Shown in pieces: positions 14,091 to 61,628 of a stretch of DNA of 64,000 bases. Each line of letters opens with the position of its first letter. Within the stretch, counting starts at the first letter, position 1. The translations under genes were made by a program, and so were the position numbers. The stretch is from sequence record NC_017972.1. One strand, 5' to 3'. Under the pieces are notes generated by a model. That model was not told the origin of the DNA and searched no databases. It worked only from the letters and a program-made list of their open reading frames with translations.

Positions 14091-14100
14091 ATAATTTAAA
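14091..14100 (+). promoter_or_regulatory. Candidate phage late-promoter motif ATAATTTAAA
   Basis: Intergenic, identical to 4006-4015. Confidence 0.35.
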
Positions 14101-26319: not shown

Positions 26320-26586
26320 ATGTGGGGATGGTTGAAGACTAGAGCAAACTGGAAATACGTTGTAGGATCACTGATCTTCTTTGTGAGTTTGTTCGCCATT
26401 GTTTTTCAGCGCAAAGAAACGCCAGAACCGGATAACTACAAAGGCGATGCGCTAGAATCTCAGGTGAACGTGGCGCCAATCGAAAAAGCGCACAAGGAAA
26501 TCTCGGACGTACTCAAGCCAGTACCTAGCACCAAATCAAACGAAATTGATGACGCCATAAGGACGTGGAAGAATCTAGGAGGCTAA
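26320..26586 (+). CDS. Single-TM membrane protein (candidate i-spanin-like or antiholin)
   Basis: YVVGSLIFFVSLFAIVF TM segment plus short helical tail. GGAG 9 nt before the ATG at 26320. Confidence 0.55.
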   Translation: MWGWLKTRANWKYVVGSLIFFVSLFAIVFQRKETPEPDNYKGDALESQVNVAPIEKAHKEISDVLKPVPSTKSNEIDDAIRTWKNLGG

Positions 26587-32534: not shown

Positions 32535-32594
32535 ATCCTCTAGGTATTAGTCGGGTACGCCGCTGTGCAACGTACCTTCTTAAATTACACCTTA

Positions 32595-32605
32595 TATTTA
32601 CAGTT
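32595..32605 (-). promoter_or_regulatory. Repeated motif AACTGTAAATA (candidate phage promoter), copy 1
   Basis: Exact 11-mer at a gene junction, 60 bp upstream of the Nudix start. Confidence 0.65.
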
Positions 32606-32774
32606 AACGGCGCATGTCGTGAATGGCTTGCTCAGCCGCATCCACAAACGTCAAACCGCTATGGCCCCACGACCACGGCGCGGTCCAATCGGGATGGGAA
32701 ATCAACTTTTTGCGGAAGCAAACGGTCAGCTTGAGGTCTTCCAAATCTTCAAGGAGTATCCGGTAATCAATCAT
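32604..32774 (-). CDS. Small hypothetical protein (56 aa, not in ORF track)
   Basis: MIDYRILLEDLEDLKLTVCFRKK...DMRR. Fills the gap between two motif copies. Confidence 0.6.
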   Translation of the reverse strand: MIDYRILLEDLEDLKLTVCFRKKLISHPDWTAPWSWGHSGLTFVDAAEQAIHDMRR

Positions 32775-32811
32775 TTTATTCTCAGTGCGAGAGCGTTGTG
32801 GTTATACTGTA

Positions 32812-32822
32812 TATTTACAGTT
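32812..32822 (-). promoter_or_regulatory. AACTGTAAATA motif, copy 2
   Basis: Intergenic, directly after the stop of 32823..33677. Part of the inverted repeat ACTGTA-TATT-TACAGT. Confidence 0.65.
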
Positions 32823-33677
32823 TTACGAACGGAAGGTAATGATGAATTTTGGCTCTTTGTAAACGCTTTCAGGCGAATCAAGCAAGGCCGCGACGTGCGG
32901 GTCAGCGGAACCCAAAACAACCTCGACCATTTCGTGCTTAACGGATTCCAGACCACGCGCCAGCATATCGAACAGGAAATAACTCGGCTGGTGCATTGTC
33001 ACGAAACTATTACCGACTTCCACTTGGCGGCGGTGTGGTTTGGACAAAGCTGCATCGGCAGTCAGGCCAGCGATAACATCGTCAAAGTTTTTGACCAGAG
33101 CGCTAGTCGAATCTTCGATGTATCTATAGAAATCGCTGTAGCGGTCGTTTGCGAACGACGCATCCATTTGTGCATCAGGGTGGCGGTGCGCGTAAAACGC
33201 AATCGACAAGATGAAGTGTTTGTCGTTATCTCTTGCGTCCGGTTTACCGAGGTACAGATCGATACTCTGACCGACTTGCGTTTGGTACGTTTCGATACCG
33301 GCTAGACCGAACACATCTTGCACCTGCGCTACGATAGCTTTTACTTTCGTTTCCAGAACGCCGGAACGCTCAGCCAAATCGACAACGTGCGCAACCAATT
33401 GTTGGCGCGTTTTTTCGTCGGTGATGTTGTGGCCCGACCATTCCTGTTTACCGCCACCAACCACAGCGAATCTGCGCGCTCCGTCTTCGACTTTGTAGAA
33501 CCAAATACCGTAACCGTTTTTGACCAGACGGCGATGGGAATCCGGGCCGCTGTTAACCCACGCATTGCTGTCTGTGTGTTGGTTAGGGCGTTTGTGGGAA
33601 ACGCTCACAAAACCCAGCTCTTCCAACTCCGTCATCAGCTGGTTGGCGACTTCGACGGAAATGATATTTTTACTCAT
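32823..33677 (-). CDS. Hypothetical protein
   Basis: Start re-assigned to ATG 33677 (MSKNIISVEVA), overlapping the upstream stop. Confidence 0.75.
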   Translation of the reverse strand: MSKNIISVEVANQLMTELEELGFVSVSHKRPNQHTDSNAWVNSGPDSHRRLVKNGYGIWFYKVEDGARRFAVVGGGKQEWSGHNITDEKTRQQLVAHVVDLAERSGVLETKVKAIVAQVQDVFGLAGIETYQTQVGQSIDLYLGKPDARDNDKHFILSIAFYAHRHPDAQMDASFANDRYSDFYRYIEDSTSALVKNFDDVIAGLTADAALSKPHRRQVEVGNSFVTMHQPSYFLFDMLARGLESVKHEMVEVVLGSADPHVAALLDSPESVYKEPKFIITFRS

Positions 33678-34581
33678 TGGGTTCGCCCACAAAAGGTTGT
33701 TTGAACAGAATGCGTGTATCGGTGACTTTGTAGCTTGCCGCGTCAAGGTCTTGCTTAACCAACAAACCGTCGATTGTAGCATTGCCGGTTGTCGATCTTA
33801 CGGTGTGTTCTTTGCTGCCAACGCCCAGCACGCCAAGGTCGAGCATGTATTGCAGATATTCGCCGGGGCAACCGAGCGTAACGATCAGGCCGTTACCTTC
33901 GTTCGCACAAATCAGGAATTTTTTGAAGCGGTCGTGCTGGTCGCGAATCACGCGCAGGCAGTCTTCCAGCGTTTCGACTTTATTCCGGGGAGTATCGTCG
34001 TCTTCGCATTCGCCGTCGTCCGGTTCGGCGCAGCCTGTATCCTCGAAAATGCGCCAGTCATTACCGACGAAAATTGCAGACTGCAAAACCATTGCGCCGG
34101 GGCGGTTGAATTTCAAGGTAAACAGATCGGGTTTTGCGTCCGAGTCCGCGTCTTCCAACGGCAGCGCCGGGCTGATATCCAGCTTGAAATGAATTCGTTC
34201 TTTTTTCTCGACGCGCAGGAAAGGAATACCTGCCGCTTCCAGCACAGGCGCCAATTGATCAGCCAGTGCATTGAGTGCGGCGTGTTTCCGATCCAGACTG
34301 TTGGCTGCGCTGATAATGCGTTCGGCCAACTTGTTCACGTCTTTGGCCTGCTTCGGACCGCATATTCTGAACTTAGGAACAAACGCAGTAAAACTAGCTT
34401 CTTTTTTCGGCGTCGTGTAGTAGGAAGTGCGTACCCACGCGAGGCCGCGACGGTACATGTTTTCGGTGCGAGCGGTACGCGATTCAGCGTTGCCCGTTTC
34501 TACGCCGTGCTCAGTGCAAATAAAACCGGCATCGTGCAGCAGGGCTTCCAGTTGCTGGATAAATTCTACTTCATAGCGCAT
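33670..34581 (-). CDS. Hypothetical protein
   Basis: 303-aa ORF, TAA ATG coupling. Confidence 0.75.
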   Translation of the reverse strand: MRYEVEFIQQLEALLHDAGFICTEHGVETGNAESRTARTENMYRRGLAWVRTSYYTTPKKEASFTAFVPKFRICGPKQAKDVNKLAERIISAANSLDRKHAALNALADQLAPVLEAAGIPFLRVEKKERIHFKLDISPALPLEDADSDAKPDLFTLKFNRPGAMVLQSAIFVGNDWRIFEDTGCAEPDDGECEDDDTPRNKVETLEDCLRVIRDQHDRFKKFLICANEGNGLIVTLGCPGEYLQYMLDLGVLGVGSKEHTVRSTTGNATIDGLLVKQDLDAASYKVTDTRILFKQPFVGEPNE

Positions 34582-34890
34582 TTAATTTGCCTCCACGGCT
34601 GTTCTGTTCCACTGGCTTGCGTTGCGAATCAATACGTCGTCAATCTCGCCGCGAGAATCCAAATCCAAAGTTTCCGAACGCCCGTGGCAATTAGGATCGC
34701 CGCTGACTTCGCAGAAACCTGCGCTAACCACATTCAGCGTTGGCTTGATATCGCCGCCTGTACGATCCATTGCGCGAATCGTCATTTGCGACATTACATC
34801 GTGGTTGATGCACTTTGGAAAAATGATCGGCAGTTCGTGAATCACGCCGGTCTGATAATCGCGTCCTTGCATAACAATGTACTTCATCAT
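34582..34890 (-). CDS. Conserved-type phage hypothetical protein
   Basis: MKYIV...ELPIIFP...H..M...VSAGFC...C.G.SETL.L.S pattern seen in phage small proteins. AAGG RBS. Confidence 0.7.
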   Translation of the reverse strand: MMKYIVMQGRDYQTGVIHELPIIFPKCINHDVMSQMTIRAMDRTGGDIKPTLNVVSAGFCEVSGDPNCHGRSETLDLDSRGEIDDVLIRNASQWNRTAVEAN

Positions 34891-34905
34891 TTCTCGTTTT
34901 CCTTG

Positions 34906-35040
34906 TTAACGACGAATAGCGAAACCGGAATGCCCAGTTTGTGCAGCGAATCCCTTGGAGACTTTTGGTTCGTTGCAACCGATCAACGCGACAAGCGCGA
35001 AGACCGGCAACAGCGGCATAATATTGCGGAGATTTTTCAT
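34906..35040 (-). CDS. Small lipoprotein (44 aa, not in ORF track)
   Basis: MKNLRNIMPLLPVFALVALIGC lipobox. ATGA overlap with the 35037 stop. Confidence 0.6.
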   Translation of the reverse strand: MKNLRNIMPLLPVFALVALIGCNEPKVSKGFAAQTGHSGFAIRR

Positions 35041-35468
35041 AGCAATACTTTCCTAAACCCTTGGTCAAAGAAAATCGTTACGCCTTGTGTTTTGGAGCCG
35101 TGGCCTGTGATGCACACTGCACCGGGACTGCGTGAAATCTTGTGCTCGAAATCTACCCGTTTGAACAAAGCGCCATTCTCTTTGCAGCGCGCTTTCATTT
35201 TATTTACAGTTTCGTAGGAGAAGCGTGGCGGCTCACGGAGCTGGAATTCTGTGTACCAATACTGCGCCCACTCTTCGCGCTTCTGCACATCCCTTGCACG
35301 TTCTGCGTGGCGTTCGGAATAGCCGTTAAACGAATTACTCTTTGGGCCGTTTATGTACCACACAATCCCGAGGAAAAACAGCAAGGCAAACACAGCAAGG
35401 AACAGAGCGGTCAGGGCATCGCTCTTAGCATGACGGTCGCATTTGCAACAGCAACATTTAGTCGTCAT
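35037..35468 (-). CDS. Membrane-anchored hypothetical protein
   Basis: ALTALFLAVFALLFFLGIVWYI TM segment. Confidence 0.7.
   Translation of the reverse strand: MTTKCCCCKCDRHAKSDALTALFLAVFALLFFLGIVWYINGPKSNSFNGYSERHAERARDVQKREEWAQYWYTEFQLREPPRFSYETVNKMKARCKENGALFKRVDFEHKISRSPGAVCITGHGSKTQGVTIFFDQGFRKVLL
35201..35211 (-). promoter_or_regulatory. AACTGTAAATA motif, copy 3 (intragenic)
   Basis: Exact 11-mer, 160 bp upstream of the 35040 start. Confidence 0.5.
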
Positions 35469-35772
35469 TTTTGCACACCTTTTTGAAGCCTTGGCCTAGC
35501 GGCGGAATACCCGGCATCGCAGGCCAGTGTGCGTTAATGCGTTTGATCGAACCGTCTGGCGCTTCGCACACAGCAAACACAGGCGTAGGGGCGTTGGCTC
35601 GCAAATCGGTTTCTTTGCCTTGGTATTTCAGGCCTTCCAATTCACAAGTTTTCTTTGCAGAATCGCCCCACGGGTCTTTCGACAAATCACGCTGCGCAGG
35701 AGGCACGCACTCTTCTTTGGAACAGCCAACCAGCGCCAGCGCTACAGCCAAAACAATAGAAATCTTTTTCAC
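35458..35772 (-). CDS. Lipoprotein
   Basis: Start re-assigned to GTG 35772: MKKISIVLAVALALVGC lipobox. Confidence 0.75.
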   Translation of the reverse strand: MKKISIVLAVALALVGCSKEECVPPAQRDLSKDPWGDSAKKTCELEGLKYQGKETDLRANAPTPVFAVCEAPDGSIKRINAHWPAMPGIPPLGQGFKKVCKNDD

Positions 35773-35825
35773 GTCATCTGCCTCTTTCGTGGTTGGTGCC
35801 CGCCGAAGCAGGCACCGTTTACTTT

Positions 35826-36041
35826 TTACTTGTTGAATTTCTGCCGGATTTTCTGAGCGAGAATACCCAGCCCGGAATGGGCAACATACGCAAACTCGGC
35901 GGCACTGAGCACAAAGCCCAGCAGCACCATGACTGCGAAATCGCCAGCGCCCGACCGACTGTGCTGCCATGCGTATTTAAACGCGGAGTAAATCCACATG
36001 GACAGGACAACCAGCAGGAAAAGAGCAAGAATACGCATCAC
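35826..36041 (-). CDS. Small multi-TM membrane protein
   Basis: 71 aa, mostly hydrophobic. ATGA-coupled to the ATP-grasp gene. Confidence 0.7.
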   Translation of the reverse strand: MMRILALFLLVVLSMWIYSAFKYAWQHSRSGAGDFAVMVLLGFVLSAAEFAYVAHSGLGILAQKIRQKFNK

Positions 36042-37426
36042 AGATATTCCTCTTCATCGTCATCTTCGTCTTCGATATCGTCGATCAGAATGTGTGGAAT
36101 GAACCGCTCATTTTTCCACGACAAAGTAGGCGATTCAAATTCACGAATGCACAGCGTAGCGGCAGTGGATTCGCGCATGGTGACGTAGTTGGTCGAAACA
36201 TCCGGCACCATAAACATGCCGATGATGAAATTGTTGCGGCCCGGAACTTGGAACGGCGGCGCGTACATTTGATAAACTACGTCGTCACCATCGTATGCGC
36301 CATCGGTCGAATAATTATGCGAACCGTCAGCATTGAAAATGGTGATGTTGTTCGACATGCGTCCGATTTTTGGCTTGCTTACGAATTTCTCGCCAACTTG
36401 CAGGAAGCGCTGGTTGTTGAGGTAGGTCGGCAGCACCGGAACGTTTTCATAACGAAGCCGGAAATCTTCGTCGGTTTCGATCAGGTGGGTGATGAATGCC
36501 CAAATGCCTTTGTTCGACGCAAACCAGCGCCATGCAGGCTCAAGGAAGGTAACGTGTTGGCCCCAGTTCGTCCATTCCTTGAATGCGTGCGGCGCAACTT
36601 TCACCATCGATTCAATCATTTCTTCCCACGGCAGCAGGGCGAAAATAACCGACGCCGGGGTATCGCCAATCACAAACGGATTGGAGCGGTTGGTGAAGTC
36701 GTAATCCATTTCGGTAATGTCGGCGAACATACATTCGTTTTCTTCACCGAGAATTTGCTGGATAACTTCACTGGTCGCCACGTCTTCAAACGTGTTGTGG
36801 TCACAGATTACGGCGGCGGTGCCGGGGATAGCGCCCATGTTGCGGATCAGTTCTTGTAGCGTCGGATAGAAACTATTCAACTGCAAGAAATTGTCGCCGG
36901 TCAGCGTTTCGCAAATCATGTTTTGCTGCGAAACAGCTTCAAACAGCATGGTCGGCGTATCGCCGTTGAATTCGTAGATGCCTTCGACTTGATTGGTGTC
37001 AGGATTCAGCGTGGCGTCGAAGCGGCCATAAATTGCTTGGCGGGCACTTCCAACATCGCGGTAAGTGAAGCGGGCATAGTCGAGGAAATACGGGTGGCGG
37101 CGCAGGAAAGCGCAACCCATATATTTCATGACTTCTGCATCAGGAAGCGCGAACAATTTGCCGACAGCTTCGACCAGCATTGCGTAAGCATTCTCGAATG
37201 TGGTTTCGATTTCTGCACACGCGGAAAGCGGCAGTTCGTAGACCGGCATATTGCGCGAATTTTTGAGGGTAAAATCGAAATAATCATGCACGTCTTTGTA
37301 GAACGCTGCGTCGCACGCGGCTTGGCTTTGGCCGGGAGCTTGGCGGTAGAAGGCCTGCGTATACGGCAGTTCTTCGTTCATCATTTTGTTCAGATCGAAA
37401 TTGATATCGTAGTGCGTGCAGTGCAT
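36038..37426 (-). CDS. ygiC: Glutathionylspermidine-synthase-like ATP-grasp ligase (YgiC/YjfC family)
   Basis: IYGRFD...IYEFNGDTPTMLFEA, FALLPWEEM, FLEPAWRWFASNKGIWA and VSKPKIGRMSNNI motifs. No amidase domain. Confidence 0.9.
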   Translation of the reverse strand: MHCTHYDINFDLNKMMNEELPYTQAFYRQAPGQSQAACDAAFYKDVHDYFDFTLKNSRNMPVYELPLSACAEIETTFENAYAMLVEAVGKLFALPDAEVMKYMGCAFLRRHPYFLDYARFTYRDVGSARQAIYGRFDATLNPDTNQVEGIYEFNGDTPTMLFEAVSQQNMICETLTGDNFLQLNSFYPTLQELIRNMGAIPGTAAVICDHNTFEDVATSEVIQQILGEENECMFADITEMDYDFTNRSNPFVIGDTPASVIFALLPWEEMIESMVKVAPHAFKEWTNWGQHVTFLEPAWRWFASNKGIWAFITHLIETDEDFRLRYENVPVLPTYLNNQRFLQVGEKFVSKPKIGRMSNNITIFNADGSHNYSTDGAYDGDDVVYQMYAPPFQVPGRNNFIIGMFMVPDVSTNYVTMRESTAATLCIREFESPTLSWKNERFIPHILIDDIEDEDDDEEEYL

Positions 37427-37455
37427 AAATCACTAATCCTTAGAGAAAGAGAATG

Positions 37456-37481
37456 AGCGGCCCGTTCTCTGAGCCGCTTTT
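37456..37481 (-). other. Intergenic stem-loop between lipoprotein and ligase genes
   Basis: AGCGGC...GCCGCT inverted repeat. Weak U-tract on the coding strand. Confidence 0.5.
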
Positions 37482-37497
37482 GTAGCTTTGATTTTAA

Positions 37498-38169
37498 TCA
37501 GCTCGACGAACCGCCATGCGCCGAACTACGGCCACCGCCACCGGATGCAAATATCGCTTTTGCACGCGATTGCGTAGCACTTTGTACCGAGGCCGGGGCA
37601 CTGGAAGGCGAAGCGCGCCATTGCGAAACACGGGAATTCAGGTTTTGTCGGTAGTTCGGCGCAGCGCGGACAGCTGCGCGATTTTGGTTCATCATCGCAG
37701 CCGCATAACCTGCGGTGTTGCTGTTACGGCAACGGCGGCGTTCGTCGCGATTATCACACTGCGTTGTTTGCAGCGGTTGGTGCTGTTGCTGGTATTGCTG
37801 TACGCCCCCGGAACTGGTCATTGCTTTTGCCAGCAGATAACCGCCCAGCGCACCAGCACCAGCAGAGGCAACCATCGGCCACACGGAATCACTGCTTTGT
37901 CCGTTCGCTTCTTCGCGGACAACGTGCATTTGCTTTTTGCCGTTTTCATCCAAGGTAAAGTAAACGTCTTTTACCGTTGGGTCTTGCGCTTGCAATTCCT
38001 TCAACGCGGCTTGACGATCTTTTTCATCATCGGCCAATTGCTGGCGGGTCTGCGCGCCCGCTTGTTCATCGACGTAAGCCTGCTCTTCGTCTGGATATGC
38101 AGCATCACCGCTGTCACAACCTGCGAGCAAGGCCAAAGCCGACGCCAAAACGACTACCTTTTTACTCAC
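37498..38169 (-). CDS. YgiB/YjfM (DUF1190)-like lipoprotein with Gly/Ser-rich C-terminus
   Basis: LASALALLAGC lipobox. WPM...GYLLAKAM..GG..QPL resembles YgiB WMPLMAGYMMGRLM..QPL. Ends ASGGGGRSSAHGGSSS. Directly upstream of the ygiC-like gene. Confidence 0.7.
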   Translation of the reverse strand: MSKKVVVLASALALLAGCDSGDAAYPDEEQAYVDEQAGAQTRQQLADDEKDRQAALKELQAQDPTVKDVYFTLDENGKKQMHVVREEANGQSSDSVWPMVASAGAGALGGYLLAKAMTSSGGVQQYQQQHQPLQTTQCDNRDERRRCRNSNTAGYAAAMMNQNRAAVRAAPNYRQNLNSRVSQWRASPSSAPASVQSATQSRAKAIFASGGGGRSSAHGGSSS

Positions 38170-38522
38170 ACTTTTTTCCTCTTTAGCTTAGTGAATGCTA
38201 ACGCGGCGAAGTGTTCCGCGCTAACGTGGTTTTTGATGAATTCGTAACCCTTTTCGTCCACGTACATTATCGTGTCCACGCAAGGGTAAAGCGAAGTTTC
38301 CAAACGCTTGCGCTTGTACTCCATAGACGAAACGTGCATCGACGTAGGCATACCGTTGGCGTCTTCAAGCAAGATAAAACGCGCTTTCTCGCAAGGGTCA
38401 GGTTTGATCAGGCAGCAAACGTAGTCGAAGCCGCTCAGGGCAATATGCTTGCCCAGCGCTGCGCGGCGAACCACCTCAGACTGCGGAACGAAATGCACAT
38501 GACCGTTATCCGTTTTCTTCAC
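38166..38522 (-). CDS. Hypothetical protein
   Basis: 118 aa, GTG start, ATGA coupling downstream. Confidence 0.7.
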   Translation of the reverse strand: MKKTDNGHVHFVPQSEVVRRAALGKHIALSGFDYVCCLIKPDPCEKARFILLEDANGMPTSMHVSSMEYKRKRLETSLYPCVDTIMYVDEKGYEFIKNHVSAEHFAALAFTKLKRKKV

Positions 38523-38532
38523 GTCTATATCC

Positions 38533-38543
38533 TATTTACAGTT
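38533..38543 (-). promoter_or_regulatory. AACTGTAAATA motif, copy 4
   Basis: Gene junction, 10 bp upstream of the GTG at 38522. Heads the unit containing the ygiB/ygiC-like genes. Confidence 0.65.
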
Positions 38544-39378
38544 ACACCGTGTTGAGTTCTTTGCAGTCTTCGTCAGACACCAGTTCTTTGAAGCGGATAG
38601 CGTAATAGATATCCTCTTTGCGGTCATTGCCTACAATCCGGTTCATTCGCTTATCCGGCGCGCAGTAACGAATCTCCGAACGAACGCGTCTGATGCTGGT
38701 CAGGCCGTAGCGGAAAAGGAACGAGAAATAATCACAAGGTTCCAATCGCGTGTACAGCACGTTGTCTTCGATAAACGAACCGCTGTGTGCGTTGTTGAAC
38801 AGTTCGTGATCCTGCATGTGCGCCATGATTTCTTCGGCGTTTTTTACGTTGAACGATTGGTAGCACTCTTCCAACCACACGCGCATATCGGCGAAGCCTT
38901 TGTGCAGGCTAATTTCCAGCAATTTTTCATTGCGGAAACGGAACGTGTAACGGAAATATTCGCGGTCGTAGGCCCAGCGTAGTTTGATACCTTTTTCTGC
39001 CGCCAGCACTTTGAACAATGCCGCCGTTTCGCTAAGCAGTGCCAGCCGCCGCTCAATGGCCTCGATCAATTCGTCCACGTACTTTTGCAAGCCTTCACCT
39101 TCTGGCAAGAATTTACCAGTTGGATCGACTTCAATTTCATGGCTGGTAAAGCGCACATTTGCCCAGCCGGGTGGCGTGCCTTCGTAAGTGTCGCGGTCGT
39201 GCTTCGGCGCGTATTCGATTTTGGTTACGCGAACATCCAGCGGTGTAAACGGGCGCGAGAAAGTAAACTCGACGTTGCTAATGGATCGGCTTTTGTCGAT
39301 CTTGAAACCGTGTTTGACTAGCAGGTCGGAAAGAATCTGAATTCCTTCCGGGCTAAGCCGCACAAATTTCTGACTCAT
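38542..39378 (-). CDS. Hypothetical protein
   Basis: 278 aa, ATGA overlap. Confidence 0.75.
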   Translation of the reverse strand: MSQKFVRLSPEGIQILSDLLVKHGFKIDKSRSISNVEFTFSRPFTPLDVRVTKIEYAPKHDRDTYEGTPPGWANVRFTSHEIEVDPTGKFLPEGEGLQKYVDELIEAIERRLALLSETAALFKVLAAEKGIKLRWAYDREYFRYTFRFRNEKLLEISLHKGFADMRVWLEECYQSFNVKNAEEIMAHMQDHELFNNAHSGSFIEDNVLYTRLEPCDYFSFLFRYGLTSIRRVRSEIRYCAPDKRMNRIVGNDRKEDIYYAIRFKELVSDEDCKELNTV

Positions 39379-40181
39379 TTCAATTCTCCTTCAAGAATCC
39401 TGCGATCTGCGTCCGAAACTTTGGAACGCAAGTTGATCATTGTATAGGTAAAACTACGCTGTTCATCTTGCAGCAATTTATTCAGATACGAATCATCGGA
39501 GGTCATGTTGGCCTTGCCTTCGATTTCCCGCATAGAGCGCACGCCATACTTGAACATAAACGGGATAAAATTCTGCCAGCCGCCGGTGGAAAGAATACGG
39601 GATTCGTAAACGCGAACCGTCCGAACATCGTTATCGAAATTCAGGGCGCGCAGAGTGTCCAGCGCCTGCTCATGTGTCATGCAAAGATCGGAAACTTCGC
39701 CGCCCGGTGTAAATACCGTGAACTTAACGCCCGACGTAAAGTCACGCTTTAGTTTTACGTTCATCAGCAATTTGCCTTGCAGCTGGAAAGTCCAGCAGGC
39801 CGACAAATGGTTGTAAAACAATTTGGTGCGGATGCCAAGATTGGCGCTAGCTGCTCTGAGGTTCTCGCAAAACTCTTCGGCGCGACTTACGATGTTTTCT
39901 GCGTGGTAAACCCGTTCGTCAATGTACGAAATGATTTCAGCAAGCGTCGGCTGTTGCACGGTCATGCCGCGATAGGCGATGTACTTACTGCCAATGGCAA
40001 ACCCGTTAATGGCGGTGTTGCTTTTAGGCCCAACGAATTGCAGGCGAACGGACAGCGGCAAGCGCTTGTGCCCGTAGTCAGAGAATGAGGCCCAGTTAGA
40101 AATAGAAAAGTTTTTCGATTTCAGGTAGGCCTTGAGGCGTTTGGTTTCGTCAGTGGTCAAAGGCGCGAAGATCATTTGCAC
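39375..40181 (-). CDS. Hypothetical protein (possible distant paralog of 38542..39378)
   Basis: 268 aa. Both have N-terminal L..e..k.L...l.k..f.I and C-terminal F.PF.FkYGv.S.R patterns. Confidence 0.7.
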   Translation of the reverse strand: MQMIFAPLTTDETKRLKAYLKSKNFSISNWASFSDYGHKRLPLSVRLQFVGPKSNTAINGFAIGSKYIAYRGMTVQQPTLAEIISYIDERVYHAENIVSRAEEFCENLRAASANLGIRTKLFYNHLSACWTFQLQGKLLMNVKLKRDFTSGVKFTVFTPGGEVSDLCMTHEQALDTLRALNFDNDVRTVRVYESRILSTGGWQNFIPFMFKYGVRSMREIEGKANMTSDDSYLNKLLQDEQRSFTYTMINLRSKVSDADRRILEGELK

Positions 40182-40834: not shown

Positions 40835-40865
40835 TGTGATTCCTTATCTAGCTTTCGTGGTTGGA

Positions 40866-41390
40866 TCAGAGGTATTTGTTAGCAAAGAACTCGATTCGAT
40901 CTTTGTGCATCAGGAGCAAAAACGTGTTGTGTGTCCAAACCAAATCCGTGCCCATGAATACTTGGGTATCATCGCACACGAATTGACAACGGCTTTGTGC
41001 GCGCACGTCCTCGGCCTTTTCCCATTCCATGACCATTTTTACGCGGGTTAAATTTACCATGACGTTTGCATACGCCACCTGATAAACGTTGGCCTCGCCT
41101 CGGGGAATGTAGTTGTAGAGGATCGCCCTACTGGTGCCCTCTACCCAAAACAAATTCGCGGGCCTTTCCAGAAAATGCTTTTGTGGAAGCCAGCCCTGTT
41201 TTTCAATCACGATTCGCTTGCGTAGCTTAGCCACATATTCCCGCAAACCGGTGTCACGACCGTAGGCAGCGCCTTCGGCTAATTGCTTGAGCACCATGTA
41301 AGCATTTCGCATGGCATTCCGTTTTTCCGCAAGGGCATCACGCGTCTGCTTCGACAGCTTGACCTTGGGCGACTCGGAAGTATTTTGCAT
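40866..41390 (-). CDS. Hypothetical protein
   Basis: 174 aa, AAGG RBS. Confidence 0.75.
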   Translation of the reverse strand: MQNTSESPKVKLSKQTRDALAEKRNAMRNAYMVLKQLAEGAAYGRDTGLREYVAKLRKRIVIEKQGWLPQKHFLERPANLFWVEGTSRAILYNYIPRGEANVYQVAYANVMVNLTRVKMVMEWEKAEDVRAQSRCQFVCDDTQVFMGTDLVWTHNTFLLLMHKDRIEFFANKYL

Positions 41391-41407
41391 CGGACTTTTC
41401 CTTGTAC

Positions 41408-41797
41408 CTAAACCTTACGACCTAGCGTCGTTGGGTCAGTTTCATCAGTCACGTATTGATAGCCGCCTTTGTTATACAAAGGCGCTACCCGTTTTTTCTT
41501 TTTCTCGATTTCTACTTGTGCTGCGGCTTCGCGTTCTTGCCAGCCATCATACTGCAAAATTTCGTCACGGGAAATCTTGTTGTCGGAGGCCCGTGCTGGC
41601 GCCTCAGTAATCAACTTAACATCCAGATGCTTTGCGTTTTTGCTCACGTCTAAAGTGCTAGACGCTTTCGCCTTTCTTTTCTCTTTGGGCAGAGAACCAT
41701 CCGGGTTCCGGCCAAGCTGTTTTGCAAGCTTAGCCTTCTCCGCTGCTTCTTTCTGCTCACGCTGCTTTCGTTGTTGTAACTGCTTGCGTGTAAGCAC
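41408..41797 (-). CDS. Basic protein with C-terminal APLYNKGGYQY motif
   Basis: Motif recalls a conserved uncharacterised family of T4-like/large myoviruses (AP.YNKG.YQ). Confidence 0.6.
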   Translation of the reverse strand: MLTRKQLQQRKQREQKEAAEKAKLAKQLGRNPDGSLPKEKRKAKASSTLDVSKNAKHLDVKLITEAPARASDNKISRDEILQYDGWQEREAAAQVEIEKKKKRVAPLYNKGGYQYVTDETDPTTLGRKV

Positions 41798-41807
41798 GGC
41801 AAAATCC

Positions 41808-42122
41808 TTATTCGGATTGTTGGATCAGTTGGCGTTCCTCGGTGGAAAGCTTTTCAGCGATTTCTTCCAGCGGATGCGCGCCAGTTTCTTCGGCTTCGAT
41901 GTGGTCGGCCATACGTAGCAGGATTTCGTCTTTCAGGCCCCGGCTGCCGTACTCGACGCCGCCGATGGTTTGTGTGTGCTGGCAGGAAATAAACATGCTC
42001 TGCACAACGCCCACGCCAGCGGCTTTGATCGGCCACGGGAATTGCACTTGATCAAGATCGACCGCGTGCCCGAAAATCATTGGTACTTCTTTGCCATCGA
42101 TTTCAACAACTACGTATTTCAT
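41808..42122 (-). CDS. Hypothetical protein
   Basis: MKYVVVE...PMIF pattern similar to 34582..34890. Confidence 0.7.
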   Translation of the reverse strand: MKYVVVEIDGKEVPMIFGHAVDLDQVQFPWPIKAAGVGVVQSMFISCQHTQTIGGVEYGSRGLKDEILLRMADHIEAEETGAHPLEEIAEKLSTEERQLIQQSE

Positions 42123-42361
42123 CAGTGCTTGCTCCCCGAGACTACATGCTCGAACATGTCCACGATTTCATCGTAGGAAATTTGAACTTCGTTGCGCTCA
42201 ATGGTGAACGCGGTTTCTGTTGCGGTTGCCACGATTTCAAACGAACCGGACAGCTCACGCGGCACAGCAACTACGTAGTAATCGCCGTGCTTCTGAATGT
42301 CGGTTGCCCTTACGCCCGCAAAGTCGGACATGGAATGTGAAGCGTATATACGAGTGACCAT
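42122..42361 (-). CDS. Hypothetical protein
   Basis: Start re-assigned to ATG 42361 (GGAG upstream). Confidence 0.65.
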   Translation of the reverse strand: MVTRIYASHSMSDFAGVRATDIQKHGDYYVVAVPRELSGSFEIVATATETAFTIERNEVQISYDEIVDMFEHVVSGSKH

Positions 42362-42476
42362 TTCAATTTCTCCAAAGACATAATTTTCCCTCGACTCCCT
42401 TAAAGGCGGTCCCAAAGACTGAACAGCCTATCCATTTCGCCAGCTGGCGTTGCCATTTTTCTTGTCGGTGTTGCTG

Positions 42477-42680
42477 TTACAGCTCCCGCTCCCACGTTGC
42501 TTTTAGGCGAGTGGACTGGGGGAATGCGATTAGCAGTCTCCGGCTTTGTTCCGATGTGAATTGCCGGGCGCGTAACCTGCTTTTGCATAAATAAGCTCGT
42601 TTTAAATCAAAGTTGTAGATATAGTCGCCCGTAGACAACCTCACTACATATTTACAGTTTTCATCGACTGGCGTAGCCAT
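42477..42680 (-). CDS. Hypothetical protein
   Basis: TAAAGGTC-ATG RBS directly after the HD gene stop. Confidence 0.65.
   Translation of the reverse strand: MATPVDENCKYVVRLSTGDYIYNFDLKRAYLCKSRLRARQFTSEQSRRLLIAFPQSTRLKATWEREL
42649..42659 (-). promoter_or_regulatory. AACTGTAAATA motif, copy 5 (intragenic)
   Basis: Exact 11-mer near the 5' end of 42477..42680. Confidence 0.5.
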
Positions 42681-42685
42681 GACCT

Positions 42686-43351
42686 TTACTCCCGTGCAAG
42701 CGTCTCCATGACGGCAATACGGGCGTCCAGCGTGGCGTTCCAGATAAAGCGTCCGGCATCAGTGAACAACTCGCTGCTTTCCATGAATGCAATTTGCGAT
42801 TTGAGCAGGGACCGAGGGTCAAGGCCCAGCTCAGCGCAAAGATTATTCATGACATATTCTGTGCCGCGTGGTTCCAGCGATTCCATAATGTCGGCATCGC
42901 GCAGCGCCATTTGCACAATGTCTACTGGTGGCACAGGGAAGCGGCCTTCGTGGAATTCCGTGCAGCGAATGCACGACTCAATGTAGGCAATTGCGTCCGG
43001 TTTGAAATACGCTTTCACGCAGTCAGCGGCACGCAAACCTGCAATGGCAATTTCAATGTTATGCGAATCGGGCGGCATACCGGTGTGGCCGAAATCATGG
43101 AACATCGCAGCCACCAACAAATGCGCATAATCGGTACGCAAACGCCAGCCAGTTGCCGACAGCAATTCATAGCCGCGCAACGCCACGCGCAGGCAGTGAT
43201 CGGTGTTGTGGTACGGCTGGTTTGTGTCGAAGTGCGGTTGCCGAACGTAGTCATAAATTTCGTTCAAGCGGTAGCGGTCGATGATCGCGCCCAGCATTGC
43301 CGTGCGGTAATCGGTGGCGAGATTCAGCTGCACATTTGGATCGATATTCAT
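42686..43351 (-). CDS. HD-domain phosphohydrolase (class I PDE-like motif)
   Basis: YHNTDH, AAMFHDFGHTG and RDADI motifs. Start re-assigned to ATG 43351. Confidence 0.8.
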   Translation of the reverse strand: MNIDPNVQLNLATDYRTAMLGAIIDRYRLNEIYDYVRQPHFDTNQPYHNTDHCLRVALRGYELLSATGWRLRTDYAHLLVAAMFHDFGHTGMPPDSHNIEIAIAGLRAADCVKAYFKPDAIAYIESCIRCTEFHEGRFPVPPVDIVQMALRDADIMESLEPRGTEYVMNNLCAELGLDPRSLLKSQIAFMESSELFTDAGRFIWNATLDARIAVMETLARE

Positions 43352-43352
43352 T

Positions 43353-43547
43353 TCACTTCCTCTGTTTTCTGATGACGGTGACGTTAAAGCGAAAACGAAT
43401 TTCTTCGATGTACGAATTAAACAGCCCAATAGCTGCGCCACCTGCAATCAGAATGGCGCCAGCCGCATAGCCGCCGTTGAACGCACAGAACAGACCTGCA
43501 ACCAACAGCATGAGGGTTATCAGGTTCCAGAAAGTTTCCCGTGTCAT
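43353..43547 (-). CDS. Small two-TM membrane protein
   Basis: Start at ATG 43547 (ATGA overlap): MTRETFWNLITLMLLVAGLFCAF. Confidence 0.65.
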   Translation of the reverse strand: MTRETFWNLITLMLLVAGLFCAFNGGYAAGAILIAGGAAIGLFNSYIEEIRFRFNVTVIRKQRK

Positions 43548-44071
43548 TTGTCGTGCTTTTCCTTGTAGGCCGCAATGTCGGCGTTGAATTTCTTTTTCCA
43601 ATCGCGCACAACCTGCGAGCGGCACGGAACCTCACGCACGATTTTCAGTTGCGGGCCAACCATACGGCGCAGACGACGAATAACCGAGTTAATGTCGCAC
43701 GACCATTCGTAGTATTTGCCTTTCACGCGGCCTTGCAACGCTTCGTCTTCGACCTCAAGGCAGTATTTATATTCGACTACAAACGCTTTGCCTTTTTGCC
43801 GTTCGTTCCACACGTAGTCTTCGGCAGTTTCGTTGTGATGAACAGCAGTACCGACACAAGGCGAACTGTAGCAGGTGCGCCCACGGTAATACTCGCGCAT
43901 ATCCGTTTCCAGAATACGCAGCGTTGATTTAGCACCACGGAACAGCTTGCGGTACTTCGGCATAATCTGAATGTGGTTGCGTTTCCACTTGCGCATGATC
44001 CAGCCGCCACCGTAGACCGGGCAGTTTGGATATTCGTCAGAAAACTCACAAATCTTTTCAATCGCAGCCAC
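43544..44071 (-). CDS. Conserved-type phage hypothetical protein
   Basis: MAAIEKICEFS...KRNHIQI.P.YRK.FRG pattern. AAGG RBS. Confidence 0.7.
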   Translation of the reverse strand: MAAIEKICEFSDEYPNCPVYGGGWIMRKWKRNHIQIMPKYRKLFRGAKSTLRILETDMREYYRGRTCYSSPCVGTAVHHNETAEDYVWNERQKGKAFVVEYKYCLEVEDEALQGRVKGKYYEWSCDINSVIRRLRRMVGPQLKIVREVPCRSQVVRDWKKKFNADIAAYKEKHDK

Positions 44072-44127
44072 AATCGTTTCCTTTTTCTTCTACGTCTTCG
44101 TCTCTACGGTTTGCCATGGGGCCTAGT

Positions 44128-45102
44128 TTAGCGGGCTTCTTTTTTGGATTGTTCATACTCAGCCCCAACCGTTTCCAGATAAAGCGCCAGACGTTTTGCA
44201 TCGCACGGGCCTTGGCGTTTCGCCTGCTTCACCACACGCCGCACAGCCGCTTCGTGTTTGTGCTTTTTGCGTTCCTTTTCGTACAGCGCCGGAACGTCTT
44301 TGTAGAACAGCCGGTCGATGCGTGTAGGGAAGTGCGAGTAGGAATCCCACAAAACCGTTTTGCCAATGCCCGGTTCGATTTCCATTTCCACTACAGGCGG
44401 TGGATTACCGAGATATTTATGAAAACGTTCCAGCGCATCTGCGGTAATGTCCGCTTCCAGCCCAGCCAACGGGTCCGGGTCTTCCAAGCAAATATGCGCA
44501 ATATCTTTGCCTTCGCGCTTCAAACGTTCCAGCACTTGCTTGTAGAAATAACCAGAGAAACGCGCAGGTGTGCCGAACACCGGAATGACGCCAACCGGAA
44601 ACCCACCAGTCAGCATACGATTATTCTCGATGATTTCGCTTACCAGTTTATCGGCACCACAGGTTAAAATGGGCATACGCGGTTTATTCGCTGCATTTTC
44701 TGCCAGCTTTGCCATTACATTCGACGCGCCGTGGCTGGTGTCCGCCATTTTCACAACCAACCCACCAGCACGGACAGCCTGTTCGGCACGGGCACCGTAA
44801 CGCATACCGAAAAGCGCACTGCGCATTTCACGACGTTCTGCTTCGGCACCTTCAAAAAACTTTGCAGCATTTTCTTCGTGCATCAGGAACTCCGACAGGA
44901 ACGTTTGGATTGGGGAATTTTTGGTTTGCTTCGGGATTTGATCGACGGAAAACGGCGACATTTTCCAGCGACCATGTGCGCGGTTCTGGTAGTCTACAGC
45001 GGTGTTGTGGAACGCGCTGTGATCCTCGGGGCCACACACGAACAGGTCACGCACGCGGCGCCAGCCAAGACTATCAACGAGTTTTTGGATCGATGGAGAC
45101 AC
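44128..45102 (-). CDS. Hypothetical protein
   Basis: 324-aa ORF, AAGG RBS. Confidence 0.75.
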   Translation of the reverse strand: MSPSIQKLVDSLGWRRVRDLFVCGPEDHSAFHNTAVDYQNRAHGRWKMSPFSVDQIPKQTKNSPIQTFLSEFLMHEENAAKFFEGAEAERREMRSALFGMRYGARAEQAVRAGGLVVKMADTSHGASNVMAKLAENAANKPRMPILTCGADKLVSEIIENNRMLTGGFPVGVIPVFGTPARFSGYFYKQVLERLKREGKDIAHICLEDPDPLAGLEADITADALERFHKYLGNPPPVVEMEIEPGIGKTVLWDSYSHFPTRIDRLFYKDVPALYEKERKKHKHEAAVRRVVKQAKRQGPCDAKRLALYLETVGAEYEQSKKEAR

Positions 45103-45343
45103 AGTTAATTCCTTTCTCTTCCTTCATTACTTTTGCAAGGTGATCGGCCACAACTTGCTTACCGGTTTTCTGCTTTTGCTGCATCACTTGGCGCACAGCA
45201 GATTGCAGAATATTGCTGCGCTTTTTCATTGGCACCGTTTTGTAACGCTCGGCCAGTTCAGCCAGTACGGTTTGTGCGTTAGCGCCCGCTGCAATACGCT
45301 CAGCCATGAATTGCATGGCGTCCTGCTCCATCGACTTAATCAC
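45074..45343 (-). CDS. Hypothetical protein
   Basis: 89 aa, overlaps both neighbours. Confidence 0.6.
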   Translation of the reverse strand: MIKSMEQDAMQFMAERIAAGANAQTVLAELAERYKTVPMKKRSNILQSAVRQVMQQKQKTGKQVVADHLAKVMKEEKGINCVSIDPKTR

Positions 45344-45800
45344 GGTTGCGATTCTCTGCGATGGTTTGTTGGCCTTCGACGTAGGCGAATGCGTATTGGA
45401 TGTTTTTGCGCATCTTGGAAACCGCCATGCGGAATGTGTCTTTGCTCAATTTCAGCAGCACGGAATCGCGTGGCGTTTCCGCTGCGTTTTCCGGCAGAAC
45501 AAAATAGGTTTTGATCAGCGGCATTGCAGTGTCATTGCTTTTGATCAGGGACACCGCTCCCGTTGCTGGCGCAGTTTCAATCGCTTTCTTGATGTGGCGC
45601 TCTACCAACATCACAGAAACTTCCAGCATTTCGTCCAGCGATTCCGCAACCACGCGCTCGCCTTCCACTTCCATCAGAAACAGCGAATTATCGGTGTTGA
45701 AATCGTGGTGATACGAACGGCCCATGCCGTTGAAAATTGCACAGGCAGAATCGCCAATGCTGTTGAGCAGTTCGATTTTGTAAGCGGTGGAATTGTTCAC
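45336..45800 (-). CDS. Hypothetical protein
   Basis: Start re-assigned to GTG 45800 (GTGA overlap, GAGG RBS). Confidence 0.7.
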   Translation of the reverse strand: MNNSTAYKIELLNSIGDSACAIFNGMGRSYHHDFNTDNSLFLMEVEGERVVAESLDEMLEVSVMLVERHIKKAIETAPATGAVSLIKSNDTAMPLIKTYFVLPENAAETPRDSVLLKLSKDTFRMAVSKMRKNIQYAFAYVEGQQTIAENRNRD

Positions 45801-45967
45801 GCAAAAGCCCTCAGTACGAAAGTGATAACATCGCCGCAATTCATGATGCCGATAACGTGGAACGCGAAACGCCACGGCCCGTCAGGTCCGTTCGGATGTT
45901 CCTCGCTTGGGCGCAGCTGCCACAGGCACAAACCGACCATCAGTAAACTCAAAAACAGATTCGTCAT
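45797..45967 (-). CDS. Small membrane protein (56 aa)
   Basis: ATG 45967 overlaps the NADAR stop (ATGA): MTNLFLSLLMVGLCLW. Confidence 0.55.
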   Translation of the reverse strand: MTNLFLSLLMVGLCLWQLRPSEEHPNGPDGPWRFAFHVIGIMNCGDVITFVLRAFA

Positions 45968-46491
45968 TCCACCAGTTCCGCCAGCCGCATCATCGTGTGT
46001 TCTTTGCAGACTTTCCACACGTCTACGCCTTTCATAGAATCGCGGAATTCCATAAGCAGAACGCCCATCATATCCGCGCCCTTGCCTGCATCGTTCACGC
46101 CCCAGCCGCCTTTATCCCACTGCGCTAAATGGGACAGCTTTGTTTTGCCGGTTGCCAGCAGCGCCAGCAGACGCAGCGGGTTTTGCATATACGATTCTTT
46201 GATCATTCGACGCATCGTGTCGATACGTTTTACGTCGTGATCTTTGCGCTGTTTTCCCTTCGCTTTGTCTGAGCCATAATACTTGGCTTTGTACGGGTCG
46301 AAGGCGTTGAGGATTTTGCGGCGCAGTTCCTCTTCTGACTTCGCCAGTTTGAAATACTGGTAGCCGTGCTCAATCGATTTGAACGTGAGCTTTTTGTAGA
46401 TGAACGGCGCAGGCCACAGCGCGCTAAAGACTTCGTTCTGGTACGAATTGAACTGAATTACTTCAACGCTTTTTCTTGGACTTTTTGCCAC
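45964..46491 (-). CDS. ybiA: NADAR (YbiA-like) hydrolase
   Basis: FSALWPAPF...FKSIEHGYQYFK, LLATGKT.L, D..WG and G.dmMG.LLME.RD match the NADAR consensus. Confidence 0.85.
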   Translation of the reverse strand: MAKSPRKSVEVIQFNSYQNEVFSALWPAPFIYKKLTFKSIEHGYQYFKLAKSEEELRRKILNAFDPYKAKYYGSDKAKGKQRKDHDVKRIDTMRRMIKESYMQNPLRLLALLATGKTKLSHLAQWDKGGWGVNDAGKGADMMGVLLMEFRDSMKGVDVWKVCKEHTMMRLAELVE

Positions 46492-46630
46492 TAGGTTCTC
46501 CCTTAATCACGCTTTCAATTGCAGCGGATACGCTTGGGCTAAGTTTTACCAGCACAGGGCGCTTGCGCTTGCCCTGCTCGTCCAGTTCCCACACGGTTGT
46601 CCAGAGGCCTTGCGAATTAGGCACGATCAT
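46463..46630 (-). CDS. Small basic hypothetical protein (55 aa, not in ORF track)
   Basis: MIVPNSQGLWTTVWELDEQGKRKRPVLV...; fills the gap between 46617 and 46491. Confidence 0.45.
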   Translation of the reverse strand: MIVPNSQGLWTTVWELDEQGKRKRPVLVKLSPSVSAAIESVIKGEPSGKKSKKKR

Positions 46631-46835
46631 AAATTTCCAGCAGCACGAAATCGGCGTTGGAGTAATTCTTTTTCAGCGCTTCATCCAACGCTTCAAGTGC
46701 GTCGGCTTTTTCGCTGTAGTCGTTGGTCAAATCCAAATCGCGATTCGGCGTCATCATCACCGTTTCTTGTTTGGTGTAGTTTTCGTCCCAACGCCAATCC
46801 AGTTGGCGCCATTCGTAACGAACTTTAATTGCCAT
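46617..46835 (-). CDS. Hypothetical protein
   Basis: Start re-assigned to ATG 46835 (GAGGG RBS). Confidence 0.65.
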   Translation of the reverse strand: MAIKVRYEWRQLDWRWDENYTKQETVMMTPNRDLDLTNDYSEKADALEALDEALKKNYSNADFVLLEIYDRA

Positions 46836-46895
46836 TTTACTTGTACCCTCGGTTGAATTGAGCGAGTGCCGAAACACCCGCCCAATTTTTACGGT

Positions 46896-47459
46896 TTAAT
46901 CGCAGCCACCGCCACCGCCAGAATCACCGGAGCTGCCGGAATCACCACCACCGCCCCAGCCGCCAGAATCACGCGAAGGCGTATCGTAGGAATCCGACCG
47001 CGACGGACTGCACGAAGGCGCAGGCGTAGAGCGAACAGCAATTGGATCATCTGCAATAAGAGCAGGGTTAATGTGATAATCCCCGCTGTCATCACGACGG
47101 TCAGTGCGGCGACGAACTTCACCGGATTCAACACGCGCACCCATGCTTACAGGCAATTGCTTTTCTGGATATTGCGCACGGAGCGGTTCCCGCCGCCCCA
47201 TATTTTCCCGGTCCAGTTTTTCTTGCTTGTCGCGTTCTTTCCGCGCCATTTCCGCGTCGTAGAAATCCAGCGTAGGTTTCAACGCGGATTCAACACGCTG
47301 CAATTGGAGGCTCAGCTTCTGGCACAAAGACTCTTGCGCCTTTGCTTTAGCGGCCATAACAGCCGTATTGTCGTTAACGCGAACCAGCTCGTTAAACAGC
47401 AACTTGTATTTGCGGCGACCGAACAAAAAGTCGTACCAGCGCAATGGCAATTGACGCAT
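46896..47459 (-). CDS. Coiled-coil protein with Gly/Ser/Asp-rich C-terminal tail
   Basis: Ends SRDSGGWGGGGDSGSSGDSGGGGGCD. Confidence 0.7.
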   Translation of the reverse strand: MRQLPLRWYDFLFGRRKYKLLFNELVRVNDNTAVMAAKAKAQESLCQKLSLQLQRVESALKPTLDFYDAEMARKERDKQEKLDRENMGRREPLRAQYPEKQLPVSMGARVESGEVRRRTDRRDDSGDYHINPALIADDPIAVRSTPAPSCSPSRSDSYDTPSRDSGGWGGGGDSGSSGDSGGGGGCD

Positions 47460-47471
47460 GAAAAATCCCTT

Positions 47472-48323
47472 TTAGTAGTAGAGGGCTTGCAGCAGGTCGT
47501 CGTGCGAAACACCTTCGGAAGTGCTCAGGTGCTCAGCGAAGATTTTCGACCAGTTTTCAAACGTGACGTGCGGGTAAGCATCATGCAGCGCGGTAACGCG
47601 AACCGGATCAATGAAATCCAGATGTTTTTCGCGGTTGCCGATAGTGACGCCCGGTTTCAGTTTCATGCGCCACGCGAACGCCAGATGCAGACGGCCAACG
47701 TTGTCGCTGTTGTCGAAAATCAAACCTTCAAAATGCACGGAGGCCATGCGGGCCAGATCATGCGCGGTGCCGATCAGAATTTCTTTATCGGTGCCTTCGT
47801 TGAGATAGGCCTCGAATTTCAGACCGTCAATGTAGAAGGACATTTCCTCGAAAGCTTCGCGATAAATGTTATTGATCGCGGTAGCAATTGGGTCGATGAT
47901 CGAAGTCGGACGGCCTTGAGCGTCGATAACTTTTTCGATATCAACCAAATCGCAGTGACCGCCCGGAGCAATGGAGCCACGGCCTTTCAGATCGGATTCA
48001 CCGGAGCCTTCACGCGAACGCATGTACGGGTAGATTTCACCGTCTGCATTTTCGACTACGAAATAGTTGAGCCACTGCGCATAATCGCGGTTGCCTTTGA
48101 ACGATTCGCCCCAGTTGAAAGCTTCGTCCAAATCTTGGCGCTGGCCGATAACCAGCGCGTGCTGCACGTAGCGCACCAGACGCATGAAATCTACGTACAG
48201 GAAACCGGACGGATTAGGCGAACCCATTGCGGTGAAAGCATCACGCAGCGCGGTACGGCGGATAGCCAGAATCGACTCAGGATATTTGACTTCGGCAGGT
48301 TCAAACTTGAATGGCTTGTACAC
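47472..48323 (-). CDS. Nudix-fold phosphoesterase (COG4112-like)
   Basis: Y.RS..GSGES.L.GR.SI..GGH motif. Confidence 0.7.
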   Translation of the reverse strand: MYKPFKFEPAEVKYPESILAIRRTALRDAFTAMGSPNPSGFLYVDFMRLVRYVQHALVIGQRQDLDEAFNWGESFKGNRDYAQWLNYFVVENADGEIYPYMRSREGSGESDLKGRGSIAPGGHCDLVDIEKVIDAQGRPTSIIDPIATAINNIYREAFEEMSFYIDGLKFEAYLNEGTDKEILIGTAHDLARMASVHFEGLIFDNSDNVGRLHLAFAWRMKLKPGVTIGNREKHLDFIDPVRVTALHDAYPHVTFENWSKIFAEHLSTSEGVSHDDLLQALYY

Positions 48324-48370
48324 GTTTACTTCCTTTCAATGTAGAGGCACACCATTGCACCTCTACTTCC

Positions 48371-48381
48371 TATTTACAGTT
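48371..48381 (-). promoter_or_regulatory. AACTGTAAATA motif, copy 6
   Basis: Intergenic, directly after the 48383 stop and 47 bp before the GTG at 48323. Confidence 0.65.
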
Positions 48382-48382
48382 T

Positions 48383-54968: not shown

Positions 54969-54977
54969 ATTTTGTAT

Positions 54978-61617: not shown

Positions 61618-61628
61618 TTACAGATTCC

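Follow-up and report, generated by a model that had tools for sequence, protein, structure and literature searches.

A single-box promoter candidate in front of non-structural genes of Pseudomonas phage Lu11 and its occurrence in related jumbo phages

Early-middle-late cascades are classical in phage gene expression, as in T4 and SPO1. The late promoter of T4, TATAAATA, is read by gp55 together with gp33 and the gp45 clamp, and at the gp36-dependent middle/late promoters of phiEco32 and the gp28-dependent middle promoters of SPO1 a phage sigma factor redirects the host core polymerase to a phage motif which replaces the host consensus. An 11-mer, AACTGTAAATA, hereafter the box, was analysed here in a window of 64,000 nucleotides (the whole stretch under analysis), corresponding to bases 186001-250000 of Pseudomonas phage Lu11 (JQ768459/NC_017972), a 280,538-bp jumbo myovirus whose host is Pseudomonas putida var. 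Manila. Over a 12-kb piece of the window, the identity with Lu11 is 100%. In a preceding sequence-only reading of the window, the box was proposed to be a -10-only, phage-specific promoter, and this proposal was supported in silico by the co-orientation of the box with genes, an about 12-fold intergenic enrichment, the absence of a -35 element, the spacing to start codons, the conservation in related phages and the presence of a sigma factor gene.

The box is interpreted as the putative core of a single-box (-10-type) promoter of about 22 nt without a -35 element, with the consensus a-W-W-A-CTGTAAATA-n-n-a-a-G-t-A-n-R. It would be bound by the host core RNA polymerase with a phage-made specificity factor, and would serve the non-structural ('middle') genes of Lu11. 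Transcription would be initiated shortly after the box, the conserved purines at 5-9 nt being the probable start points, and leaders of about 20-25 nt would result. The most likely reader would be the sigma-70-family protein Lu11_0170, with a clear region 2 and a short C-terminal part. The probability of this explanation as a whole was estimated at about 0.75. With respect to its parts, the box is very likely to be a promoter, its assignment to the middle class is probable, and that of Lu11_0170 as the reader is tentative.

The comparison with the T4 late promoter, drawn in the sequence-only reading, stands as an analogy only. The core TGTAAATA is identical to TATAAATA at 7 of 8 positions and each consists of one A/T-rich box near -10 and lacks a -35, whereas a gp55 homologue and late genes behind the box were not found in Lu11. 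The candidate reader resembles gp55 in being a sigma protein with region 2 and no clear region 4, but Lu11_0170 (336 aa) is similar to domain 2 of primary sigma factors and not to gp55. Late genes lie behind the box in T4, whereas replication and accessory genes lie behind it in Lu11, and additional A-rich and CTG positions are conserved upstream in the Lu11 box. In Lu11, TATAAATA was present in 6 copies versus 2.1 expected, so that its enrichment is not clear. The phiEco32 and SPO1 systems differ from Lu11 in their sigma families and motifs, and the SPO1 promoters retain a -35 element.

Copy number, anatomy and orientation of the box

Exact search of the window for TATTTACAGTT, the plus-strand form of the box, gave six copies on the plus strand (32595, 32812, 35201, 38533, 42649 and 48371) and 0 on the other strand. 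The earlier estimate of about 0.03 chance copies was reproduced by dinucleotide shuffles (mean 0.03), and at least six copies were reached in 0 of 100 shuffles. The earlier statement that no copy occurs in the opposite orientation or in the plus-strand block holds for the exact word (0 copies), and a search with one mismatch added only 26347-26357, which is opposite in orientation to the six exact copies and lies within the plus-strand block. The partial copy CCTGTAAATA is present at 54975-54984. According to the GenBank gene table, four copies (32595, 32812, 38533 and 48371) are located at gene junctions, as had been described, and of the remaining two, that at 42649 lies within a small annotated open reading frame (ORF), Lu11_0281A, and that at 35201 is truly intragenic (Lu11_0268). 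The exact copies in the window, with their weight-matrix scores, are as follows.

32595..32605, minus strand: exact box AACTGTAAATA, overlapping the stop codon of Lu11_0263 and ending 66 nt before the NUDIX gene Lu11_0262; 23.3 bits; absent from the GenBank annotation.
32812..32822, minus strand: exact box, directly after the stop codon of Lu11_0264 and ending 37 nt before the start of Lu11_0263; 26.8 bits; GenBank feature 32805-32820.
35201..35211, minus strand: exact box, inside Lu11_0268 and 160 nt upstream of Lu11_0267; 26.9 bits; unannotated.
38533..38543, minus strand: exact box, overlapping the stop codon of Lu11_0274 and 10 nt upstream of the GTG annotated as the start codon of Lu11_0273 (38166-38522); 25.6 bits; unannotated.
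42649..42659, minus strand: exact box, 26 nt past the stop codon of Lu11_0281 (phosphohydrolase) and 21 nt into Lu11_0281A (42477-42680); 26.6 bits; unannotated.
48371..48381, minus strand: exact box, ending 47 nt upstream of Lu11_0292; 29.7 bits, the highest score genome-wide; GenBank feature 48364-48379.

The copy at 35201 is a possible internal promoter. At 38533, the mRNA may have a very short leader or be nearly leaderless, or else the start codon of Lu11_0273 may be mis-called; likewise, for the copy at 42649, the ORF call of Lu11_0281A may be wrong or the mRNA may be nearly leaderless.

In a genome-wide motif scan of Lu11, the exact 11-mer was found 21 times (14 and 7 copies on the two strands), always co-oriented with the local genes. 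The 9-mer CTGTAAATA has 33 copies genome-wide versus about 1.6 expected, and ACTGTAAATA is the top over-represented 10-mer of the genome (28 copies versus 0.29 expected). An iterated weight-matrix scan of the whole genome, with a threshold of 13 bits and the reversed sequence as the control, gave 53 sites versus 3 in the control. Other strongly over-represented words were also encountered, such as GAAGACGAAG in Lu11 and GAAGAGGAAG in phage HRDY3 (88 copies), and their excess is most likely due to acidic stretches of the encoded proteins.

The logo of 33 sites extends over about 22 nt and reads a-W-W-A, the invariant CTGTAAATA, n-n and a-a-G-t-A-n-R, with AAA/AA as the upstream flank in Lu11 and conserved purines 5-9 nt downstream of the box. 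Core positions are invariant, and the information at positions -20 to -5 is below 0.15 bit; therefore no -35 element is present. The element thus consists of one conserved A/T-rich box with no conserved -35. The pattern of a host sigma-70 promoter (TTGACA, a spacer of 16-18 nt and TATAAT, with A at -11 and T at -7) was not matched, as there is no -35 and no T at -7 in any register. Matches to sigma-70-type promoters in the window from 30 to 50 kb numbered 8 versus 15.5 in shuffles, and none was found on the minus strand at any of the six sites; their scarcity at 30000-49999 suggests an avoidance of host-type promoters in the minus-strand block.

Placement of the box on the coding strand, which had been noted for the window, extends to the whole genome, since all 53 weight-matrix sites, the intragenic ones included, are co-oriented with the local genes. 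The orientation follows even small flips, as at 106017 (a lone minus-strand primase gene), at 103181 (a plus-strand block of 102.5-104.9 kb) and at 171935 and 175204 (a minus-strand block of 170.4-175.1 kb; all in genome coordinates). As the reverse complement of the box is free of stop codons in all frames, the orientation bias cannot be attributed to coding constraints. With respect to placement, 27 of the 53 sites are intergenic or coincide with a stop codon, whereas non-coding DNA makes up about 4% of the genome and coding DNA about 96%, which corresponds to an about 12-fold enrichment; these counts are approximate, being based on a crude gene model of our own, and the sites in the window were re-checked by hand against GenBank. 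The distance from the end of the box to the next start codon is mostly 25-50 nt, typically about 30 nt, with a range from about 20 to more than 60 nt. Terminator-like T-runs are located directly upstream of several sites in Lu11 and in phage PaBG.

Conservation, gene classes and the second box TAATTTA

The proteins of HRDY3, PaBG, Erwinia phage Alexandra and Dickeya phage AD1 are 37-75% identical to those of Lu11, and the box is kept before orthologous genes. CTGTAAATA was counted 18, 22 and 28 times in HRDY3, Alexandra and AD1, respectively, with 0-1 copies in the controls, and 18 times versus 2 in Xanthomonas phage PhiXhv-12; the enrichment in Vibrio phage GR7B was weak (9 versus 3). In PaBG, 0 exact copies were found and a degenerate form, ACTGTAAAYN, precedes several genes. 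The box stands before the DNA polymerase I gene, 42-48 nt from its start, in Lu11, HRDY3, PaBG and Alexandra, and before the SSB gene, in the space between it and the sigma gene, in each of the five phages compared; orthologous primase and clamp genes are also preceded by it. Among the window copies, that of Lu11_0292 (48371) has counterparts before the HRDY3 and PaBG orthologues, and that of the NUDIX gene before the HRDY3 orthologue. Around the box, including the stretch down to the ribosome site, no sequence conservation was seen at orthologous sites. A box kept at orthologous places amid unconserved sequence is a phylogenetic footprint of a putative functional DNA signal. A G+C-rich hairpin with a T-run, resembling a terminator, was also observed between the SSB and RecA genes (131826-131890 in Lu11) and is kept in the five phages compared.

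Genes downstream of the boxes comprise those of the DNA polymerase, the primase, the clamp, SSB, a topoisomerase operon and thymidylate synthase, together with many small genes without assigned function. No boxes were found in the tail (26-57 kb) or baseplate/fibre (175-214 kb) blocks of the Lu11 genome. A k-mer search of the gaps between Lu11 genes gave a second word, TAATTTA(A), in 13 intergenic gaps. As (G/C)TAATTTA(A), it is co-oriented with the genes and precedes both tail-sheath genes, the baseplate block, the fibre block, the endolysin gene and others, and it is unannotated in GenBank. TAATTTA is strongly enriched in PaBG (14 copies versus 1.3), and a longer form, TAATTTAA, is enriched in HRDY3 (9 versus 1.5), mostly 25-45 nt before a start codon in these two phages. 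TAATTTA is a candidate late promoter. Both box types have a common layout of a 9-bp box, about 4 nt and (G)TA. The earlier suggestion that the box drives accessory and not structural genes, possibly as a middle class, is thus supported, with replication and accessory genes downstream of the box and TAATTTA in its place in the structural blocks. Both words occur back to back in a divergent gap of 94 nt in Lu11 (175135-175228), with TAATTTA facing the baseplate operon and CTGTAAATA facing the thymidylate synthase operon, and the same arrangement was seen in HRDY3 near 89298.

Weaker copies of the box and the TAATTTA boxes in the window are as follows.

54975..54983, minus strand: partial copy (C)CTGTAAATA, its TAA being the stop codon of Lu11_0304, with a G+C-rich hairpin 8 nt downstream; 21.1 bits; GenBank feature 54968-54983.
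61615..61623, minus strand: degenerate copy CTGTAAATG, its ATG being the start codon of Lu11_0313; 23.4 bits.
62549..62557, minus strand: degenerate copy CTGTAAAGA, inside Lu11_0317; 20.1 bits.
26349..26357, plus strand: weak one-mismatch copy CTGGAAATA, co-oriented with the plus-strand block, at the 5' end of Lu11_0252; 18.2 bits.
4007..4013, plus strand: TAATTTA box in the tail-fibre block, upstream of Lu11_0237 with its end 29 nt from the start; candidate late promoter.
14092..14098, plus strand: TAATTTA box, upstream of Lu11_0240 with its end 28 nt from the start.
24971..24977, plus strand: TAATTTA box, at the 3' end of Lu11_0249 and ending about 116 nt before Lu11_0250.
32581..32587, minus strand: TAATTTA box, downstream of the exact copy at 32595 at a distance of 7 nt.

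The last of these places two boxes in tandem before the NUDIX gene. The copy at 61615 may be a coincidence of a gene junction, because its ATG is the start codon of Lu11_0313.

Candidate readers and rival explanations

A sigma factor elsewhere in the genome, which the sequence-only reading had proposed to look for, was found outside the window as Lu11_0170 (129287-130297, 336 aa). It matches Sigma70_r2 with 30-33 bits, above the cut-off, and is named a sigma factor in RefSeq. Its family profile matches region 2 of RpoD/SigA structures in the PDB, and its AlphaFold model (predicted local distance difference test score of 81) matches sigma-70 domain 2. Region 2 is followed by a disordered stretch and three short helices, and region 4 was not recognised. 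Among the PHROGs, general sigma families were matched and the gp55 family was not. Catalytic domains of an RNA polymerase (PF00940, PF00562 and PF00623) gave no matches in Lu11; for PF00940 (the single-subunit type) this is a weak absence, since its control gave no match anywhere. Lu11 thus encodes a member of the sigma family, and no phage-made RNA polymerase was detected. In Alexandra and AD1, the box is placed 33 nt upstream of the sigma gene; in Lu11, no box lies directly in front of this gene, which is inside an operon headed by two boxes; and in PhiXhv-12, GR7B, BcepSauron, BCSR5 and Aura, none was found within 1.4 kb upstream of it. Self-regulation is common for alternative sigma factors, and a box before the sigma gene, taken as a putative promoter, fits either self-regulation or a cascade.

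Another candidate is Lu11_0178 (137298-138407, 369 aa), which is unannotated and present in all relatives tested. Its homologue in PaBG, gp112, was described as possibly sigma-like (PMC7412058). No likeness of its sequence to sigma factors was detected by Pfam (no match), by hhalign versus the sigma family (0.3%) or by a profile search of the PDB (nothing found). For the structural model of Lu11_0178, sigma factors were the top structural matches for both halves with Foldseek E values of at least 0.1, and VIA-align Z values of 5-7.4 were obtained to extracytoplasmic function and sigma-28 factors and to sigma domains 2 and 4, which are within the chance range for helical proteins. Lu11_0178 is thus a weaker candidate whose sigma-like nature is suggestive only, as judged from a predicted model. 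Of the two genes annotated as 'transcriptional regulator', Lu11_0021 has an HTH_3 domain and Lu11_0140 gave no domain match.

Pairing of the sigma factor with CTGTAAATA by co-occurrence was also tried and rejected. By tblastn, the sigma factor, and not Lu11_0178, was obtained in Xanthomonas, Vibrio and Burkholderia phages, and PhiXhv-12 has 18 copies of CTGTAAATA and 0 of TAATTTA. A profile search gave homologues of Lu11_0178 in all five phages (E from 1.8e-5 to 4.6e-25). It is a weak hint that the better-conserved protein goes with the better-conserved box.

Several observations weigh against the proposed middle promoter or against Lu11_0170 as its reader. About half of the sites (26 of 53) are intragenic, and several are too near the next start codon for a normal leader, with 10 nt at 38533 and an overlap with the ATG at 61615. 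The function of the copy at 54975 is doubtful, because the stop codon of Lu11_0304 lies within it and a hairpin follows right after. In PaBG, the sigma factor is 51% identical, yet the box is only weak or degenerate. The box before the sigma gene is equally consistent with a cascade in which the box has another reader and the sigma factor then reads the late box. Because Lu11_0178 is present in every relative tested, co-occurrence cannot separate the two candidate readers, and this argument was dropped.

The strongest rival keeps the promoter and changes its reader: the host RNA polymerase would be redirected to the box by Lu11_0178 or by an early factor altering the sigma-70 holoenzyme, and Lu11_0170 would then read TAATTTA. 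The position of the sigma gene behind the box in Alexandra and AD1 and within a box-headed operon in Lu11, the separate conserved box before the structural and lysis genes and the structural matches of both halves of Lu11_0178 all agree with such a cascade, and the identity of the box, letter for letter, across phages of six host genera could mean a very conserved reader. It is nevertheless rather unlikely. The box is a poor -10 element for sigma-70, Lu11_0178 lacks profile likeness to sigma factors and its Z values do not exceed the chance range, and its gene is in a TAATTTA-headed operon in Lu11 and PaBG, by which Lu11_0178 would be a late gene, too late for a middle box.

Readings in which the box is not a promoter were judged still less probable. 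An operator for a phage regulator, or an RNA signal for processing, stability or translation, would agree with the intragenic half of the sites, with those too near a start codon and with the A/U-rich composition of the word, which is shared by many RNase E sites. This is improbable, as the word is non-palindromic and strictly fixed in orientation, no neighbouring sigma-70-type promoter is there to be controlled, the distance to the start codon varies too widely (from about 20 to more than 60 nt) for a translation signal, orthologous sites share no conserved sequence from the box to the ribosome site, and terminator-like elements directly upstream of several sites give the usual order of terminator and then promoter. 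The least probable reading, to the point of being negligible, is that of a signal in the DNA itself (for replication, packaging or Chi-like recombination) or of a coding or mutational bias. The 11-mer is indeed strand-biased over large stretches of the genome, but its orientation flips with single genes and transcription units of 2-5 kb and not with large replication or packaging domains, 27 of the 53 sites lie in the scarce non-coding DNA, and the reverse complement, which is stop-free and would fit genes more easily, has 0 occurrences.

Existing annotation and meaning of the box

The promoter idea is not new, because the depositors of JQ768459 had already labelled the same box as "putative middle/late promoter" in 20 features, all with a length of 16 nt and composed of CTGTAAATA followed by 7 nt. 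Among the window copies, those at 32812 and 48371 and the partial one at 54975 are annotated; the other four of the six exact copies are unannotated and have the same extended logo. Three sigma-70-like "early" promoter features are also included in the record. For one of the "putative middle/late promoter" features of JQ768459, 107991..280538, the end coordinate is erroneous, and 172 kb are covered in place of 16 nt at 107991. Middle and late promoters are merged in the GenBank annotation, whereas in the present analysis the box is limited to non-structural genes and a separate TAATTTA stands before structural genes. The motif is unmentioned in the Dickeya phage and PaBG papers (PMC7412058), and a full-text literature search for the 9-mer gave unrelated papers only. 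The genome paper of Lu11 is that of Adriaenssens et al. 2012 (J Virol 86:6369).

With the box, the transcription units of this poorly annotated phage of 280 kb can readily be mapped, and small ORFs or start codons which are likely mis-called are flagged, as for Lu11_0281A and Lu11_0273. For Pseudomonas putida, a compact, host-independent pair of promoter and sigma factor could be of use as an orthogonal part for expression. Redirection of the host polymerase by a phage sigma factor is a textbook principle, and as a case of a phage-specific promoter the Lu11 box is sound, though ordinary.

For the clade of jumbo phages of Pseudomonas, Erwinia, Dickeya, Yersinia, Xanthomonas and Vibrio, it is speculated, with odds well below even, that two single-box classes of the same geometry are used, CTGTAAATA being read by a region-2 sigma factor without a normal region 4 and TAATTTA by the divergent two-domain Lu11_0178. 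Each factor gene would then lie behind its own box, and two self-reinforcing regulons, not a simple cascade, would be formed. The public annotation of 2012 is repeated here with respect to the box itself; what goes beyond it is the separation of one box class for replication and accessory genes (CTGTAAATA) from another for virion and lysis genes (TAATTTA), and the conservation of CTGTAAATA across genera.

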